DNA of 64,000 bases from assembly GCA_965112735.1 (NCBI GenBank), contig OZ218952.1, positions 2,046,001-2,110,000 of the forward strand, read 5' to 3'. The notes below the pieces were generated by a model that did no database searches, was not told where the DNA came from, and saw nothing but the letters and a program-made list of their open reading frames with translations. Position numbers and translations under genes: made by a program. Source of the stretch: Phaeosaccion multiseriatum. Its lineage: Eukaryota > Protista > Ochrophyta, other classes. This document shows positions 1 to 29,286 of the stretch, one piece after another. Position 1 is the stretch's first letter; the number at the start of each line of letters is the position of its first letter.

Positions 1-16542
<16,542 letters not shown>

Positions 16543-17184: not shown

Positions 17185-20118
17185 TTATTTGGTCACTTTC
17201 GGTGGCCGTGGCTTCTCTCCCCTGCTGCTGTAGGCGCTCTCTTCCCACTGACGGGCAAGCCATGGGCTGATGAGCTCGTAGCTCAGGAACATTATGGCCG
17301 TGTTCTGTGACACGGCAGTTGGTGATACAGACAAGAGGCACAGACAGGCACCAAGGGGCAAGCGGGTAGCGTGTCAGCGACTACGACTCCTCCTCCTCTT
17401 CCTCCTCCTCCTCCTCCTGCTCCCCCTCCTCCTCTCCCTCCTCCTCCTCCTCCTCCTCCTCCTCCTCCTCCTCCTCCTCCTCCTCCTCCTCCTCCTCCTC
17501 CACTCCCTTCGCCTCCCGCAGCCCCCCCCCCCCTTCCCTGCTTACCGGCACGACTCTGAGTATATGCACGCCCATGCCGGCGTAGAGTCCGTGGCGCCCC
17601 TCCTCCCTGGCTATGAGGCCGATGCTCTGCCACATGCCCTTGTACTTGTACACCCCGCCACGGGCCTGACGTAAGGTTACGGGAGTGCGTGGCGTGTTGT
17701 GTATGTATGTGTGTGTGAGGGAGAGAGGGAGAGAGAGAAGGAAGACCAAGCACGCGGGTACACATAGCAGACCGATAGAGAGGGAGGAAAGAGAGAGCGA
17801 GGGAGGGGAGAGAGGAGTAGCACGCATGCACGCACGCACACCCGGACGTACCAATATAGAAGGGGAGAAGCGACACCAGCAGAAAGAAGGGACAGCAGAG
17901 CAGAGCAGAGCAGAGCAGAGCAGAGCAGAGCAGTTGGTGATAGAGAGCTGGGGTCGTTGAGCCACCACACCCCACCATCATCGACCCTCTTCGATCACAC
18001 ACACACACATACACACGTACACACGTACACACACCAGTACAAACACACACACGCATACACACGTACACACACACACGCACACACCTGTTCTCTTAATCGA
18101 GTCCTCACCACCTCATGGGGGTATCTGGAAAGAGCAGATGGCAGTGGGTGGCAGTGGATGGAGAGGGGAGGAGGGGAGGGAGGGAGGAAGGGGGTGGGAA
18201 GGAGAGAGAGGAAGGGAGGGGAGAGGGTGAGACCAAGCCAACCATCATCTACTCGTGGCCCACCCCACCCCACCCCATCCCATCCCACCCCTCCACTCCC
18301 TCCTGTCCCTCGCCTTGCACCTCTCCTCTGACTGAACTCACTCCTCTGACTAAACTCACTCCTCTGACTGAACTCACGTGAGGAGAGTGCCTGTGAGCTT
18401 GCTGACAGCCGCGGCGCCGAACAAATCGGCAGCTCGCAGCCTGCCCTCCCCTCGCGCCCCCCCCCCTGCTCCATCCCCCCCCCCCCCCTCGCTCTCCTCG
18501 CTCTGAGTCCTGCGCCTCTCTCCGAGAAGATTCTTAATTCTCTCGTACATGACGAATTGGATGCACCCCTCGCTGCAGCCCCAGTAAGAAGCAGACAGAC
18601 CCTGCAGGCACAAATAAGTAAGTCAATGGGTGGGTATCGTAAGTCAATGAGTGTGTGTGTAAGGGTGGGTGAGTGGGTGAGTGGCTCGACTGATCTCATT
18701 GCTATACACTACAGTAACGCACCTTATAGAAGCCCTTGATGCCCTCGGCCTTGTAGATGGAGGCAATGGCGTTTCGGTACCCCGTGTACTTGACCTGGCC
18801 GATGGCGGAGTTGCTCAGAAGCTGCATCCGGGTCTTGACCTGGGAGGGACAGGGAGGGTGGCAAAAAGTCAGTCAGTCAGTCAGTCAGTCAGTCAGGCAG
18901 TCAGTCAGTCAGTGAGTCAGCGAGTCAGGCCGTCAAGTACTTCTCCCTCCCTCCCTCCCTCCCTTTCTCCCCCTCTCCCTCTCTCTCCGTACCATCCAGA
19001 TGGGGTTGGTGATAGTGTTGCCCGTTACCCCCGCGGAGAGGCCTGCGATCATGTGCGTGATTGAGTTGTCTCCGATACGAGGCGTCAGGAACTCCTGCTC
19101 CGAGAGAGAGAGAAAGAGAGAGGGACGGACAGAGGACACACAGAGAGAGAGAGAGAGGCAGAGAGGGCATGGAGGAGGAAGGGGAGAGAGAGAGAGGGAT
19201 AGAGGAGGGAGGGAGGGAGAGATGTTGAACAAAGATAGCGGCAATCGATTTGTAAACATGCAAAGGAAGAAAGTTAAGAGGAGCGCGCGAGGAGGAGTCA
19301 GTCATCACAGCACAGCCGGGAGGGCACTCTCATGGGGAGGGGAGGGGAGTAGAGTAGAGGCCTATATATATAATATATATATATATATACATATATATAT
19401 GGAGAGAGAGAGAGGTGCTTTGCTTCTTGTCCACGCACCTTGCAAGTACTGTAGGACCAAAAGTAGGTGGCGCGGGCAGGGATGATCCCAATCAGGGTCG
19501 GACTGAGACCTCGAAAAAAGCCCTTGACTGGTGATGGAAATAGGGACGACAGAGGTAAAGAGGGTGAGATGCGAGAGACAGGGGACCACGGGGGCAGGGG
19601 ATGATGGGAAGGCGACGGAGCGTCAAGACGGATCCCCACTCTCCCCCCCCCTCTCTCTCTATGCCCACAGGGTGTCCATGTGTGCACGGAAGAGTACCAC
19701 TGACGGAGAGGAGAAGCAACACTGGCAAGGCTTTGCAGAGAAACGCTTCTCCTGCCGTGTCAAAGGGGTCAGGGACAGAGGAGATAGCGAGAGGGGGAGA
19801 TGGAGAGGGAGAGCGAAGGAGCTCGAGAGGGAGGGAGACAGAGAGGGAGGCAGAGGGAGAGCGCGTGTGCGCTGAAGTCACTGACCTCCTTCCTCGGAGG
19901 AGATCTTCTTGACCACAGCGAGTGGTCCCCCCACACTACCATGTCCACTGCTTTGCAGCTGCGTCTTGACCACCTCAATAGGGCAGGTCAGAGCGGAGGC
20001 GATTGACCCCGCTGCACCTCCTGATATGAGGCTGAACAACTGAGAGGTTGGTGCTGCTTCGCCATTGTTGGCCGGATGGGCTACGCCCTTTCCACTGCCC
20101 TTTCTACTGTCGCTGGTC

Positions 20119-20162
<44 letters not shown>

Positions 20163-20441
20163 CTTCTCCTTCCTACTTCTTCTATTCTCTCTATTACTAC
20201 TGCAGTCTCTCTTGACTGAGTCTACGACGCCTTTGGCCCACCCTCCTGCGCTTGCCGCTGCATCCTGCGCCCGTCCCTTGAAGGACGTGAATACCTCTAT
20301 TGGTGGAGAGTCCCTACTCTGTGGCAGCTTGATGGAGCCCAAGGTCCTCCTCGCTGCCAAAACACATGATGATGTCGCCAAAGGCAGCACCAGCAGAAGA
20401 AGCAGCAGAGGCTGAAGGAGCTCTCGCCCGCTCCGAGGCAT
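17185..20441 (-). CDS. Mitochondrial carrier family protein, Rim2/SLC25A33/SLC25A36 (pyrimidine-nucleotide carrier)-like, with a signal-peptide-like N-terminal extension; 8 exons
   Basis: Exons 20441-19886, 19527-19439, about 19094-18993, 18839-18723, 18601-18378, 18124-18085, 17665-17546 and 17304-17185 join in phase. Three carrier signatures PIEVVKTQLQ, PIWMVKTRMQ and PHEVVRTRLRE, plus GIIPARATYFWSY and RVVPNTAIMFLSYE, typical of the Rim2/SLC25A36 subfamily. Confidence 0.92.
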
Positions 20442-21531: not shown

Positions 21532-24500
21532 TCAATGGCCCAGCAGCTTCTGCACCAGGCTCTGCCTGCTCTCCTCCTCCTCAACCATGAGAGCCTCCCC
21601 CACCACCACCACGCTCACCCCATCCACCGAGGCCACTTCCTGCACATCGGCGGGGGTGGAGAGCCCACCCTCTGCGATGATGACGGGGGGTTTGTCCATT
21701 GAGGCGAGCTTGGCCTGGACAGAAGGGTCAGACAGGATGCGCGATACACGGCCCTTGTCCACAGTCCAAGTGGCGAGGTTACGGCAGGAGACACTCACCT
21801 GTGGAGAGGAGGAGATGAGAGAGTGAGTGGGAGGGGAGGCGGTTAAAGGGGGGTGCAGAGGGAGGAGGAGGAGGAGGAGGAGGAGGAGGAGGAGGAGGAG
21901 GGGGGTTGAGGGGGAGGAAGAGGATTCAGAAGAGGGGGAGGGGGAGGGGGGAGGGGGGAACCTCTCAGTTTCAGTGTCAATTTTCAATCAGTGTGAAAGA
22001 AGAGCCATCCAACCGAGCGCGCTATCGTGTTGAAGTGGGTGGGTTGGGTCCATGAAACTGAAACTCACCATCTCCACATCGGCCAGGTCTAGGGCCAGCA
22101 GCATCTGAGGCACAGAGCAAACCGTTACCACCGCCTGTGGGGTGGATGGCAGTGGATGGGGGGAAGGGAGGAGTGGGTGGTCAGAGAGGGAATACAAGCA
22201 CCAACACGCGGGCATATGGGCACAGAGTCAGAGAGAGAGGGAGAGGGAGAGAGAGGGAGAGAGCAGGGAGAGAGGGAGAGGGAGAGAGGGAGAGAGAGCG
22301 AGAGCCGGGAGAGAGAGAGGGAGAGAGAACGTGTGCGAGACTCCCTTGCTCTCCGCAGACAACACCAACACTAGCAGGCACACCCACTCACCCACCCACC
22401 TACCCACCCACACACATGCACACACACACATACGCACACACATACACGCACACATACACACGCACATGCACGCACGCACACACACACATACACACGCACG
22501 CACGCACCTGCAGGCCCACGGCCTTTGCGATTTTGTGAAAGTAGATGAGATCCTTCGGGGGCAGGCCCGGCACAATGAGCTTCACCGCATCCGCCCCTGC
22601 CAATCGAGCCTAAAGGCGTATAGGCAAAGAGAGACAGAGGGAGGAGAGAGGGAGGGAGGGGGGAGAAGAGGGTAAGTGAGAGAGGGAGGGAGGGAGGGAA
22701 AAGTCCTTTCCCTACCCTATACCCTATACTCCATACCCGACTGTACGCCCCCCACCGTATACCCCATACCCTATACCCTATACCCTATACCCCCTACCCC
22801 ATATCCCATATCCTATACCCCATACCCCATACCCTACTCTACATCCTATACCCGACACTCCATGCTCTATACACCATACCCTATACCCCATACCCTACTC
22901 TACACCCTATACCCGACACTTCATGCCCCACACCCCATGCCACTCAATACCCTATACCCCATGCCCCATACCCCATACCCCATACCCCGTACCCCACACC
23001 CTATACCCCATACCCCATACCCGTATACCCCTATACCCCATACCCCTATACCCCCATACCCCTATACCCCATACCCTATACCCGAACATCCATACATCCA
23101 TATACCCATATACCTATATTCCCATATACCTGGTAGATTTGGTAGGGATAGACCACCATATCGCTGCTGAGCACAGGGGCGGTGGTGCCCTCCTTGGCGT
23201 CCGTCAGGTCATCAAGAATGCCCCCAAAGAAGGAGCGGTCAGTGCATACAAAGAAGGCAGCCGCTGCAGGGGAGAGGGTGTTGGTCAGGGCGGTGGGTTT
23301 GTAACCGTCCTCCTCGAAGAGAGGCCCGCTGAGGGGGGCTGAGCATTTGATCTGGGGGAGGGAGAGGGAGGAGGGAGAGGGAGGGGAGGAGGAGGAGGAG
23401 GAGGAGGAGGAGGAGGAGGAGGAGGAGGAGGAGGAGGCGGAGAAAGAGGGGGGGGGGGGGGCAATCGAAAAGGAGAGGATTCAATCAGAGGCGACTTACA
23501 GAGATAAGAGGGTACCGCCCAAACAGCGCACCCCTGCCTGCCTCCTCGGGACACTTCTCTTCTGTTCCTCACCTCGGCTATGAGTGCCAGTTTGTTGGCC
23601 GACTTGTCCACCGCTTGCCTCAACGCCCCCACGAAGTCTCTGGGGGCGAGGGCGGGGTCCATAGCGAAGGCTTTAACCTGCGAAGGGGAGGGGAAGGGAG
23701 GGGAGGGGAGGAGTGGAGGGAAGGGTAGGAGAGGCGGAGGAAAGCCAGTAAGTAGCATTGAGAGTATGTAAGCGAGAGAAGAGGGAGGGAGGGAAGTGAA
23801 GCAAGCCTGCACACCCACCCACGCACCCACTTACCTTGCTCACGAGCATGGCGAGTGGCTTGGCGTCCCTCTGCCTGTCCACCTCCTTCTCCTTTTGCCA
23901 CACCCAAGCCTCCAGGCGGTTAGAGGGCTGCCTCATCTTCTCCGCGACAGAGTACTCCACAGGTCCTGGTAGGATAAGGGATGGCAGTGGACGGCGGTGG
24001 ATGGGAGGCGGGGGATGGCAGTGTGTGTGTGAGGGAGAGAGAGAGGTAGATGTAGAGAGAGGTAGAGGTAGAGAGGGAAAGAGAGAGGGAGAGAGGGAGG
24101 GAGAGAGGGAGGTAGAGGTAGAGAGGGAAAGAGAGAGGGAGAGAGAGAGCACACACACAGACAGGTAGAGGTAGAATGCACACACACATTGAGAGAGAGA
24201 GGAAGAGGTAGAGAGAGGGGGAGGCGGTCTGCGAGGCAAATGCCAAGCCGGTGAAGCCTTCTCTTCCCCCTTCCCTTCCCTCCCCTTCCCACCCACTGCC
24301 ATCCACTGCCATCCACTGCCATCCATGCTGTCCGTACCTGTATTGAGGGTGCGCCCCGCCTGCAAGTCCCTTCTGCGGATCTCAAAGTTGGGATCGTCAT
24401 CCGAAACCGTCCGGTCCTCATCATCATCGTCATCATCCACACCCACCCCCTCGCCTCCTCCCCCTTCAGAGGCACCCTCACCCCCCTCCCCAACCCCACC

Positions 24501-26884
24501 CCTCCCCTTGTTGAGTGCGTAGGCCGTGCTGGAAACCATCGCCTCCCGTGACTTAGGTGAGAGCACCATGAATCCCGTGCTGCTGCCGAGAACAGCGGTG
24601 GGTGTGCCTCGGCGCAGCTGCCCAATGGCTCCGTTGGAGAAGAAACCGCCGATGGGTAAGCTCGTGGTGGAGGCGAATTTGGAGGCTTCGTGGTTCTCAC
24701 GTTCGAACAGGGTGAAACCGCGGTCGAAGCTGGGGTAGATGAGGCACCCAACCGGCTGTTGAGTGATCGGGGTGGGGTGGGGTGGGGTGGGGGGGTGGAG
24801 GAAGAGAAGAAATGGGAGGTCTCTGAATCCCCAAGCCGTGTTGTGGCCCTTTTCGTTCCTTCCTTATACAGTGTGGCCATTGACTTCGAGCTCACTCACC
24901 ACAGCATCACAACACACAGTCCGAGTCGAGTCGAGTTCGTGGGTACCTCTCCAGCCACTCCCTCACTCTCTCCCTCCCTCCCTCACTCACTCACTCACTC
25001 ACTCACTCACTCACCCACTCACTCTTCTCTTCTTCGCTCTCTCCCTCCTCTCTCCCTTCACTCACCTGAAAGGGGGCATCCTCCCCCTCCTTCTCCGCCT
25101 CCTCCCTCCCCTCTCTGTACTCGTCCAGTGTGTCATTGAGCTCTTTCTCTGCACTTTCTCTATTGCGCACAAAGAAGCGCACCCTCTGTCCGTTTCCGAG
25201 TTTGGATCCGAGTGTGCAAGCACCCGTCTTCATGTTAGAGCGGGAGATGGATTGCACCTGTCGTTGACATACAGAAGGGACCGAGGAAGGGGGTGAGAGT
25301 GAGTGTGAGTGTGAGTGTGTGTACACTCCACACCTACACCTACACATACACACACACGAACAGACACTGAGGCAGGGGGAGAGGGAAGAGCAGTGAGTGA
25401 GCGTGTTCCTACTTCCTCCACGCACTCACACACACCCTCACACTCACTGACTTACCAGGAACCGCCTGCTGTCCTCCAAGGAGGGCGTGCTTGTGCTGTC
25501 GGGGTCCTTCATGCCCGCCATGCGCTTCTTGTCCTCCAAGTTGGAGCCGTAGCCGCTCTGGGTATACGGGGTATATGGTAGGGTAGGGTATAGGGCATAG
25601 GGTAAGCGAGGGTAGGGTAGGGTAGGGTAGGGAAGGGGAGGGTGGGATAGGGTAGGGTAGGGTAGGGTAGGGTAGGGTAGGGTGGGGTAGGGTAGGGTAG
25701 GGTAGGGTGGGGTAGGGTAGGGTAGGGTAGGGTAGGGTAGGGTAGGATGGGGTAGGGTAGGGTAGGGTAGGGTAGGGTGGGGTAGGGTAGGGTACGGAAG
25801 TGGAGGCTAGGGCATACGGTAGGGTAGACAGCGATGGATGGATGAAGCGGGGCAAAACCAGCGGCGAAAGCACTACCCCCCACCCCCCCCTCCTCCCCCT
25901 CTCTCCCTCTCTCCCCCCCTCCACCCTCCACCCCACCACCTCACCGTCAAAGGCTCTATCCCCAGCAATGTGCCGCTCTGCATCTTACGACTGGCATTGG
26001 GCGGCAGTTGCCTCTGGATGAGCTTGGCCGCTGCAAGGGGGGGCATCACAGGCTGGAGCTTGTCCTCCTGACGGCCCCCTACGGCAGCGATGGGCGACAC
26101 CGCCTGTGTATGTGTGTGCGCAGGAGGAGGTGTTGGCAAGTGACAGTTTCATCAGTTTCAGGGTATGAATTACTCCGTCACTTGCAGGGTCCATCGACAC
26201 TATACACTATCGAGCACATGGAATAGCCTCATCTCACTCACTCCCTCACCTGCAGGGTCTGGTCCTCGAACTTCTCCACTGAGAAGAGCGGCCCAACTGC
26301 CGCGGCCCCCTGACTGAAGGCCGTCTTGGCAGCGATGTCGCCAAGGAGGGCCACCCCGACCAGCCCCTGTACAAGTGGGTGCATACGTGGGTGTGTGCGT
26401 GTGGTGTGTGTGTATGTGGCGTGTGTGTATGGCAAATGTGTGTGTGGAGGGATTGTGAAGCTGGGTGGGTGGGTATGGGTGGGTGTGTGCGTGCGGCCGT
26501 GTGTGTCTGTACGTGTGTATGTACCGCCACCCCCCCGCCTGAACAGGAAGAATACCCCCTAGCGAAGAGAAACCCCCCTAACGAGGAGTCACTCAGTAAC
26601 CCCCCTAACGAGGAGTCACTCAGTAACCCCCACCCCACCCACCTCTCCGTACACCACGGGGTTGGACACGGGTCCGTCGAGGTCTTCATCGATACCCGCA
26701 AACACCTTCGGACAAGCACGACACACAGTGAGAGTTTCCGTTTCAGTTGAGTAAGCCTTGCTTCCTTCCTTCTTCAATGCCATTGGCAAGACATGGCAGA
26801 GCCTTCGAGAGACATCGGTGGACCTCTTTGGCGTACTGCTAAATCAATTGGAAGAACGAGCCATCGGTCGATACGCCATACGTC

Positions 26885-26921
<37 letters not shown>

Positions 26922-29286
26922 ACGCACACACACTCAACACACACACCTGCGGACGGGTGAGGCTGCTCACAGTGCTCGAAATGGCGCCAAACTTCGTGCT
27001 GCGGTGGGTGCGTGCGTGGGGATGGGATGGCAGCGGAAGGGCACGAGATGGTAGTGGATGGGGAGGGAGCGGTTAGAGCCACACGGTATAGAGTGGCGGG
27101 TCGGGGAGGGGGTGCCGTTCAGGGCAGGGCTGCTGACACAGAAGAGAGGGAGAGGCGTCCACATCTACCTACCCTCTTTTCTCATCTCCTCCTCCTCCTC
27201 CTCCTCCTCCTCCTCCTCCTCCTCCTCCTCCTCTGCCTCCTCCTCCTCCCCCTCCTCCTCCTCATCTCACTCACTCGTTTCGATACTGGCAGGCACCCTC
27301 CCCTTCCCCTTTTTCCAAACAAAGGAACGGGTGCCATCGTACCACGCCTCCCAACGACACATTGGCCTCTTGTCAAAGCCCCCTGACTGCCCCAAAAAAA
27401 CGTTTCGTCACGATGTATCCTAACACGTAAGTACTACTACGTAAGTACCTATCTGGGAAGGCCCTGTCCAAGTTGGCCATGTAGTCAACAAGGCAACCCA
27501 TGAAGGTGGCGGTGGGGTACAGTAACAGCACGGAGGGGTCCTCTGAAACGAGTTCGCGCCCGAGCACCTGGTGGTGGGGGAAGAGGGGGAGGATGATGAT
27601 GATGATGATGGGGAGGAGGAGTAGGAGGAGGTGGTGGTGGTGGAGGAGGAGTAGGAGGAGGAGGATAATGATGATGATGATGAAGAGGAGGAGGATAATG
27701 ATGATGATGATGAAGAGGAGGAGGAAAATGATGATGATGATGACGATGATGAGGATGAGGAGGTGGTGGTGGAGGAGGAGGATATGATGATGAGGAGGAG
27801 GAGGATGAGGATGATGATGATGATGATAATGATACGGTGATGATGATGAGAAGGAAAAGGAAGATGATGATGATGAGGATGAGGATGAGGGGATCCTCCG
27901 CTTCTGGGCTTGCCTCGCCAACCCTTTCTCTCCTTCCCATCGGTTGCCATCCCCCTCCATTCTTCCTTCCCTCTTCTCTCCTCGACAAAAAAAACCGCTC
28001 CCCACCCCCTTTCTGCTCCTTCCCCCCCCCCCGGTATGCAACGTGATTACGATATAATGCCTGGTCCTGCATTCCACCTGATATCATCTTTCTTCTAAAT
28101 CCATGCCTTATCCAATGCCTTACGCATCCCCTGCCATACGCCTACCATATGCCTCATCTACGTCTTCCTTACTCCTAATCTTACCTCGACCTAGCCCCTA
28201 ACACTCACGTACCTACTTACGTACCTGTCTCCTAATGTCATCAACGGAGTCGTCGAGCTCCGGCAGATCGAACCCGTCCGTGCCCACCGTGAAGGGCTTG
28301 ACAGTGACTCCGGGGAGCGAAGCGAAGGTCACGCTGAGGCCCGCTTGGTTCTCCACCTCCACGCCTTTCCCCCTCCTCATGCCCACCACGCCGGACCCCG
28401 TGCTGCCCATCACGTAGCGGAGACCAGGTAGCCTGTTGGTTGGGTGTGTTGTGGGTGTGTTGGGTGTATGTGTGTTTGCATGGTGTCACAGACGGCAGGA
28501 TGGTGGGTGGCATAGATACATACAGATGAGAGGGTGGGCGCGCACACACACACCCGAAGAGAGGCCAACCAATCCAACGTCAGGGCGGAGCTGGATCCGA
28601 TGGATCTGTATATAGTTAGTTCACTGCTTTGCAAAGTGTTGTGTTGGCAAAGCATCCCCACAGGACAGGGTCCACACGCCCGCATTCACACACCTTTCCC
28701 TGAGCTCCGTGACGACCTTGTTCAAGGACCCCTGGCTGCCGTAGATGGAGCTCACGTGCACAATGGCAAGGTCAATCTTGGGGCCCTCGCCCCCCAACCC
28801 AGCCTTGACAGCCTTCTTCGCCACTATCTCGATGGCCTCGCTGAGGTCGCCCGAGGTGGACAGGGCAGACACCCATATGTGTGGAGGGGCGAGGCCATCC
28901 GCTCCCAGAGCTGGTGTCGGAAGGGCTGATGTCGTCTCTGCCCCGTCTTCGTCCCCCTCTGCTGTAGAGGAAAGAGGTCGTCCTGGTCTGCTTGACCTCT
29001 CCATCCTCCAGGATGCAAACCCCTTCCTCAATGCGGAATGCCGCCGCGCTGGGCCTGTTGCCCATCCCCCTCGTCTTCCTTCGCCTGCTACTGCTGCTGC
29101 TGCTGCTGTTGTTGTTGTTGCTGGTGCTGCTACCCCTCCTCTATGGCAACTGGCGCTGCCTCTCCCAGCTCCGAGAGATAGCGTGAAGCCCTCCACGGTG
29201 CCATTGAGGAACGCAATCGCCGTCACCACAGTCGCTGCTGCTACTATAGTAGCGCGGCCTGGCCCCCTCCTACGTCGCTCCATCAT
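21532..29286 (-). CDS. Predicted plastid-targeted FIST (FIST_N + FIST_C) / IGPS (TrpC)-like fusion protein, probably a pseudoenzyme; 15 exons
   Basis: Phase-consistent exons 29286-28694, 28432-28225, 27567-27449, 26998-26947, 26705-26643, 26366-26250, 26103-25945, 25557-25456, 25257-25066, 24755-24338, 23965-23835, 23677-23573, 23351-23130, 22609-22508, 22134-22069 and 21798-21532 (16 coding segments as listed). FIST motifs: [91 protein letters not shown] motifs: [63 protein letters not shown]. Confidence 0.85.
22710..23128. repeat. Heptamer tandem repeat (TACCCYA)n at the donor end of a minus-strand intron
   Basis: Directly visible. Confidence 0.9.
25578..25793. repeat. (GGGTA)n pentamer array at the acceptor end of a minus-strand intron
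   Basis: Directly visible. Confidence 0.95.
27575..27890. repeat. Compound (GAT)n/(GAG)n trinucleotide array, intronic
   Basis: Directly visible. Confidence 0.9.

Follow-up and report, generated by a model that had tools for sequence, protein, structure and literature searches.

The stretch of Phaeosaccion multiseriatum DNA analyzed here, called the window below, comprises 64,000 nucleotides (nt) of contig OZ218952.1 (positions 2,046,001 to 2,110,000, forward strand), and all positions are counted from its first letter. [quoted passage not shown] The gene extends from an ATG at 29286 down to 21535, and its stop codon occupies 21534-21532. The model was built from candidate coding segments of the minus strand, enumeration of splice sites, and local tblastn guided by homologues. 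The 16 exons join into a coding sequence of 2913 nt, without stops, that specifies 971 amino acids (aa). An earlier note, made from the sequence of the locus, had already proposed that the exons splice in phase into a single open reading frame (ORF) with these ends, and the assembly bears this out. The exon list of the note was correct at the fusion junction and at both ends, but it lacked the small exon 26998-26947. All 15 introns are of the GT-AG type with good consensus. The least certain acceptors are those of exon 5 (26705) and exon 7 (26103), both of which fall in loops that vary between species.

The two halves of the protein meet where the exon 24755-24338 ends with the donor CAG|GTACGG and where a CT-rich tract and the acceptor ...CCTACCAG|GAC lead into the next exon at 23965. 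The codon split by this intron is in phase 1 (G|GA, Gly) and is followed by the N-terminal peptide of the IGPS-type domain, exactly as the earlier note had read it. On the minus strand the frame around the junction is open from 24863 to 23676, including the 372-nt intron. This intron is in frame and stop-free, and the gene therefore forms one ORF whether the intron is spliced or retained. A transcript that kept the intron would still encode the fusion, with a low-complexity insert of 124 aa. By itself, the open frame across 24337-23966 is weak evidence for a fusion, because CT-rich sequence seldom contains stop codons.

Comparison with homologues provides the strong evidence. The 72-aa end of FIST_C served as the query in a full HMMER scan of 1.84 billion representative proteins, which gave matches in proteins of 859-885 aa, located at about residue 450-557. 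Chrysoparadoxa, brown algae, and diatoms have orthologues of 836-1040 aa that are colinear with the window protein straight through the junction, and local tblastn showed five database fusion proteins to be colinear with every exon of the window gene. The proteins are contiguous exactly at the position of the junction intron, at residue 559 of orthologue P0004 and at residue 233 of orthologue P0002, the latter being an N-terminally truncated fragment. Pfam recognized IGPS in all five fusion matches, FIST_C in all five (two of them below the Pfam cutoff), and FIST_N in three, and the precomputed Pfam annotation of family members likewise gives FIST, FIST_C, and IGPS. The full-length identity between the window protein and the database fusion proteins is 31-43% over 511-875 aligned positions. 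In an alignment of 50 sequences, the surroundings of the junction (RRD...GR...G.V.YSV.E, then LE...W.KE.EVDR.R) are among the best conserved parts, and the window protein itself has the linker motif RRD...GR...G.V.YSV.E. P0004 and orthologue P0005 lie on transcript-sized contigs of 3.2 kb and 2.7 kb, respectively, and some homologues are MMETSP transcripts marked complete. Both halves are also held by an intron-less ORF of 874 aa on a gene-dense eukaryotic contig, where it adjoins cullin and HSF genes. Since the orthologues are contiguous at the junction, the two halves form one gene, and the sequence comparison confirms that the FIST module and the IGPS-type barrel belong to a single real gene.

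The earlier note knew of no characterized protein with this architecture. A literature search likewise found no functional study of a FIST-IGPS fusion protein, but the novelty that the note implied did not hold, given that a profile search placed 111 database clusters in a FIST-IGPS-like fusion family. The architecture was found in diatoms (Seminavis, Skeletonema, Nitzschia, Fistulifera, Thalassiosira, Conticribra, and Epithemia, with Seminavis robusta, Nitzschia inconspicua, and Fistulifera solaris among the named species), in brown algae (Ascophyllum, Ectocarpus, Discosporangium, and Undaria), and in Chrysoparadoxa. Most of the entries are labeled “indole-3-glycerol phosphate synthase”; others are “unnamed protein product.” Among the 70 eukaryotic members of one ESM Atlas cluster, 100% have IGPS and 81% have FIST; when the barrel alone was used to search the ESM Atlas, only canonical IGPS clusters were retrieved, and no alveolate cluster was among them. 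Jiroutova and colleagues are said to have reported in 2007 that an InGPS of Phaeodactylum tricornutum is fused to a cyanobacterial hypothetical protein (COG4398).

Public databases already contain the architecture, and judged by its sequence the window gene adds a further member to a fusion family that is known but uncharacterized. It shares with the other ochrophyte fusions the order of the domains, the linker, the remodeled active site described below, and the kind of putative presequence. It differs from them in representing a separate lineage, with Chrysoparadoxa as its nearest relative at about 41% identity, and in having a longer presequence and a Gly/Asp-rich insert in the linker. A quick tree of the FIST halves unites the eukaryotic fusions in a single group relative to cyanobacterial FIST (Shimodaira-Hasegawa-like approximate likelihood ratio test [SH-aLRT] support of 100). 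Within this clade, Chrysoparadoxa and the window protein come together (91) inside a brown-alga group, and the window protein is on a long branch (end branch of 1.47).

The region is eukaryotic and intron-rich, with a G+C content of 52-62%, and low-complexity CT, CA, and GT sequence abounds in the introns. Within 21800-28100 the introns of the gene consist largely of CT/CA/GT microsatellites and homopolymer-like runs, which yield long spurious stop-free “ORFs” on both strands that are rich in Leu, Pro, Ser, or Cys. Because the introns are of such low complexity, most of the 103 mechanically listed ORFs are artifacts. The next gene on the same strand encodes a mitochondrial carrier (first exon 19878-20441, minus strand; Pfam Mito_carr, 37.4 bits). 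It starts at 20441, about 1.1 kb downstream of the stop codon of the fusion gene, which gives the latter a clean 3′ boundary.

Table 1. Exons of the fusion gene and the intron at the junction, with the parts of the protein that they encode
Feature	Position	Strand	Content
Exon 1	28694..29286	-	aa 1-197; ATG at 29286; signal-peptide-like aa 14-26 ending AIA|F; transit-peptide-like aa 27-135; FIST_N from aa 136
Exon 2	28225..28432	-	aa 198-267; FIST_N
Exon 3	27449..27567	-	aa 268-306; FIST_N
Exon 4	26947..26998	-	aa 307-324; family-invariant VSSL.R motif
Exon 5	26643..26705	-	aa 325-345; variable FIST_N loop; acceptor GAAG|, the weakest of the model
Exon 6	26250..26366	-	aa 346-384; end of FIST_N
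Exon 7	25945..26103	-	aa 385-437; between FIST_N and FIST_C
Exon 8	25456..25557	-	aa 438-471; weakly conserved loop and start of FIST_C
Exon 9	25066..25257	-	aa 472-535; FIST_C
Exon 10	24338..24755	-	aa 536-674 and 1 nt; end of FIST_C (DRG, GGFF.NG motifs); Gly/Asp-rich linker and conserved RRD...GR motif
Junction intron 10	23966..24337	-	372 nt; GT...AG; CT-rich, in frame, stop-free
Exon 11	23835..23965	-	aa 675-718; V.YSV.E motif (conserved); helices at the N terminus of the IGPS-like domain
Exon 12	23573..23677	-	aa 719-753; last residue is the Glu equivalent to IGPS Glu51
Exon 13	23130..23351	-	aa 754-827; Lys53 kept; Ser at the Lys110 position (PVLSSD)
Exon 14	22508..22609	-	aa 828-861; GADA strand-helix of the barrel
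Exon 15	22069..22134	-	aa 862-883; Thr at the Glu159 position (VVTVC)
Exon 16	21532..21798	-	aa 884-971 and stop codon 21534-21532; Ser at the Asn180 position; Arg182 and Glu210 kept; Gly at the Ser211 position; phosphate-binding VGE kept

The FIST half and the presequence

The presence of a FIST module, proposed in the earlier note, was supported by the match of the spliced window protein to a profile of 64 cyanobacterial FIST proteins, which scored 184.5 bits and covered positions 7-395 of 411. Both subdomains that define membership, FIST_N (PF08495) and FIST_C (PF10442), were matched. The exemplar of the cyanobacterial profile scores 114.9 bits with Pfam FIST and 109 bits with FIST_C. Single exons of the window gene reach only 14 bits for Pfam FIST_C; Pfam is weak here because single exons are too short.

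The fold was assessed on orthologue P0004, and it is for that protein, not the window protein, that it has been shown. The AlphaFold model of its FIST half (P0004:47-510; m30a1678ed3a4) has a predicted local distance difference test (pLDDT) score of 88.3 and a predicted template modeling (pTM) score of 0.89. In a Foldseek search, this model matched the human protein FBXO22 (8ua3) with an E value of 7e-13, and no other solved structure was matched below 1e-3. FBXO22 is also matched by the FIST half at the sequence level. No solved ligand-bound FIST structure was found among the Foldseek matches of the model. Weak similarity (E value of about 3e-3, probability up to 0.89) was observed to the “Toblerone-fold” cyclic amide hydrolases, such as cyanuric acid hydrolase, barbiturase, and orotic acid hydrolase. 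As seen from the model, this similarity may reflect either a remote relationship of the folds or noise.

The affinity of the FIST half to cyanobacterial proteins, also claimed in the earlier note, was found again when 185,579 species were scanned. The best prokaryotic relatives are overwhelmingly stand-alone cyanobacterial proteins of about 400 aa, which match the FIST half over the full length of FIST_N and FIST_C with 28-32% identity. A link between FIST and trpC through gene neighborhood in cyanobacteria was considered and rejected, as no trpC/IGPS gene was found within 6 kb of the cyanobacterial FIST gene in any of the 80 loci examined. Because of this, and within the loci examined, the joining of the two domains looks like a eukaryotic invention.

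The neighbors of the cyanobacterial FIST genes include two families of unknown function, DUF3177 (46 of 64 loci) and DUF7734 (31 of 64), and a metallophosphoesterase gene follows in 18 loci. An example of these neighbors is given by positions 4264-4863 (-) and 3958-4257 (-) of locus L002, with equivalent places in other loci of the set L001-L080.

The N terminus of the window protein consists of a hydrophobic segment (aa 14-26) ending in AIA|F (aa 23-26), followed by a stretch rich in Ala, Gly, Thr, Ser, and Arg up to aa 136. A signal-peptide-like segment with the A|F pattern is also found in six orthologues with complete N termini, for example SAF|QPTP in Nitzschia inconspicua. A hydrophobic segment followed by an A|F-type motif is the known pattern of ochrophyte plastid presequences, which is said to have been described by Kilian and Kroth in 2005 and by Gruber and colleagues in 2007. 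The prediction of a plastid protein in the earlier note agrees with these features, and the fusion protein is probably targeted to the plastid by a bipartite presequence. No separate presequence precedes the IGPS-like half.

The IGPS-like barrel and its active site

Pieces of the barrel encoded by single exons reach 27.2 and 27.3 bits with Pfam IGPS (PF00218; cutoff of 27), and the spliced window protein scores 86.7 bits with a profile of canonical IGPS. Structure models of orthologues point the same way. The barrel model superposes on the IGPS of Mycobacterium tuberculosis and Pseudomonas aeruginosa with template modeling (TM) scores of 0.87-0.88 and root mean square deviations (rmsd) of 1.8-2.0 Å; for the P. 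aeruginosa enzyme bound to rCdRP, the reduced form of the IGPS substrate 1-(o-carboxyphenylamino)-1-deoxyribulose 5-phosphate (CdRP), the values are 0.88 and 1.8 Å. A full-length orthologue model has a pTM of 0.74, which suggests that FIST and the barrel are packed together in a defined way. The name IGPS (TrpC) given to this half in the earlier note is correct for the type of barrel, but it overstates the case for the enzyme, given that the catalytic Lys110 and Glu159 are replaced throughout the family.

To compare the active sites, 78 barrels of the family were aligned with 12 canonical IGPS domains, using the numbering of Sulfolobus solfataricus. Lys110, the general acid, is present in 12 of the 12 canonical domains. 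In the family this position is occupied by Ser in 71 members, Asn in 2, Thr in 2, and Ala, Ile, and Met in 1 each, and never by Lys or Arg; the window protein has Ser. At the Glu159 position, Ser (35 members) and Thr (29 members, with Thr also in the window protein) predominate, and neither Glu nor Asp occurs. The window protein also follows the family at the positions of Asn180 (Ser in 70 of 78) and Ser211 (Gly in 74 of 78). Other residues are kept, namely, Glu51 (72 members), Lys53 (77), Arg182 (77), Glu210 (70), and the phosphate-binding Gly233 (72), and the window protein keeps all five. Three independent alignments agree on the active site, as in PVLSSD versus the canonical PVLRKD.

Lys110 is described as essential for ring closure by IGPS (Hennig et al. 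2002, as cited in PMC6380595). Because this residue is replaced family-wide, IGPS activity of the fusion barrel is unlikely. Judged from the alignments, the active site is remodeled in one fixed way across the family and is not decayed. The fixed substitutions, together with the retained binding residues, speak for selection toward a new function in binding or catalysis.

The phosphate-binding loop shows a clade-specific change, in that the position of IGPS Gly212 is occupied by Arg (EGRVG) in most diatom members. Gly is found there in canonical IGPS, in the brown-alga group, in Chrysoparadoxa, and in the window protein.

The step that forms indole-3-glycerol phosphate (IGP) appears to be served elsewhere in these organisms. 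Ectocarpus is listed with both InGPS and InGPS-PRAI (PRAI, phosphoribosylanthranilate isomerase; PMC3942023), and two IGPS ORFs are reported for P. tricornutum (PMC3901274). When PtI3GPS-PRAI was edited in P. tricornutum, one subclone was scored as an auxotroph (1/35 screened; PMC7431573). We infer that the IGP-forming step of stramenopiles is carried out by the product of a separate canonical IGPS-PRAI gene.

The main alternative for the function of the fusion is that it works as an IGPS isoenzyme in the tryptophan synthesis of the plastid, with FIST as an allosteric regulator that responds, for example, to tryptophan, indole, or nitric oxide (NO), and with other residues standing in for Lys110 and Glu159. 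This would agree with the name that databases give the family, with the conserved fold and the retained phosphate- and carboxylate-binding residues, and with the high Pfam IGPS scores of some orthologues (182.5 bits for P0005). It is nevertheless improbable, given that Lys or Arg at position 110 and Glu or Asp at position 159 are absent from all 78 members, that stramenopiles have the separate canonical IGPS-PRAI, and that IGPS-like proteins of Vitrella and Plasmodium without these catalytic residues did not rescue an Escherichia coli trpC mutant (Tang et al. 2019, PMC6380595).

Proposed function and comparison with known systems

In our reading, to which we assign a probability of roughly 0.7, the window gene is an orthologue of a FIST-IGPS-like fusion protein that is encoded in the nucleus, probably targeted to the plastid, and spread across the ochrophytes. 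Of the interpretation offered in the earlier note, the fusion, the plastid prediction, and the affinity of the FIST half are supported, but the novelty and the identity as an ordinary IGPS do not. We infer that the protein binds a ligand or performs new chemistry in the plastid and is not an enzyme of the tryptophan pathway. Its barrel would no longer make IGP and may instead bind a phosphorylated, carboxylate-bearing ligand like CdRP or IGP, or carry out a new reaction on one. Barrel and FIST would act as one unit inside the plastid, joined by the conserved linker, and FIST may have a second ligand or a protein as its binding partner, by analogy with FBXO22. As no kinase, cyclase, or DNA-binding domain is present, the output would most likely pass through protein-protein contacts.

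Several points weigh against this reading. Plastid targeting has been read from a sequence pattern only, and the loss of IGPS activity has been deduced, for all members of the family, from residues alone. The retained Glu51 and Lys53 serve the dehydration step in real IGPS, so that residual or altered chemistry is possible. The structure models are those of orthologues P0001 and P0004 and not of the window protein. The auxotroph of P. tricornutum loses PRAI too and is no proof that the fusion is without IGPS activity. Finally, the four sequencing runs that were found, all from one study, also contain the introns and are probably DNA.

In a different gene model, two adjoining genes, one for FIST and one for the IGPS-like protein, would have been wrongly joined across a low-complexity spacer that is stop-free by chance, and the scarcity of stops in CT-rich DNA means that the open frame proves little alone. 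Such a model is hardly credible, however, when the orthologues of no fewer than three algal lineages are single proteins that continue without a break at this very point, conservation next to the junction is among the highest in the protein, both halves occur together in complete transcripts and in an ORF without introns, and the IGPS-like half lacks its own presequence. A decaying pseudogene copy of the fusion, which the long end branch and the exon Pfam scores below those of orthologues might suggest, is equally hard to sustain for 16 exons that join without frameshift or stop, with every splice site canonical and the family-invariant residues present.

The enzyme name that databases give the fusion family is misleading, and the family is that of a conserved, probably plastid-located protein. 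Because the active site is consistently remodeled, metabolic reconstructions should not take the “IGPS” that is fused to FIST in diatoms and brown algae for the tryptophan-pathway enzyme. The genetics of P. tricornutum would offer a direct way into the role of the family.

Compared with canonical IGPS (TrpC, EC 4.1.1.48, PF00218), the fusion barrel has the same (βα)8 fold with N-terminal helices (TM score of 0.88) and shares Glu51, Lys53, Arg182, Glu210, and the phosphate-binding glycine. It differs in the replacement of Lys110, Glu159, Asn180, and Ser211 and in its location behind a FIST module. The stand-alone cyanobacterial FIST proteins of about 400 aa have FIST_N and FIST_C as in the fusion, but no IGPS domain. 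The bacterial NosP, a heme NO sensor that binds heme and partners a histidine kinase, has the FIST domain in common with the fusion, in which, however, the histidine kinase partner domain is absent. The FIST fold is also shared with human FBXO22, where FIST recognizes BACH1 and is accompanied by an F-box that the fusion lacks.

The nearest functional parallel is PfAMR1, which has an IGPS-like barrel without catalytic residues and large extensions and is essential for biogenesis of the apicoplast (PMC6380595). It has two relatives in Vitrella, which occur beside a canonical IGPS, and in the complementation test of that study PfAMR1 and the Vitrella proteins failed to replace trpC (PMC6380595). 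The PfAMR1 and Vitrella proteins resemble the algal fusion in several respects: in each case a barrel derived from IGPS has lost the catalytic residues, carries large extensions, belongs to a host with a plastid of red-algal derivation, and is found alongside or without a canonical IGPS. Unlike the algal fusion, PfAMR1 has no FIST domain annotated in the table of PMC6380595. The “TIM” construct of Vbra_14040 starts with Met-Gln-Arg-Arg-Arg-Ser, according to the primers listed in PMC6380595, which recalls the RRD...GR motif before the algal barrel and is a very weak hint of kinship.

A tentative extension of this parallel is that the ochrophyte fusion is the counterpart, in free-living algae, of the apicomplexan and chromerid AMR1. 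On this view the protein would be an ancient factor of red-lineage complex plastids that is required for their biogenesis or maintenance, with an N-terminal extension that is, or derives from, cyanobacterial FIST, and the remodeled barrel would have a phosphorylated metabolite as its ligand or substrate. We consider this doubtful and treat the link to AMR1 as a lead only. If true, it would provide the first mechanistic handle on AMR1, together with a tractable algal model.

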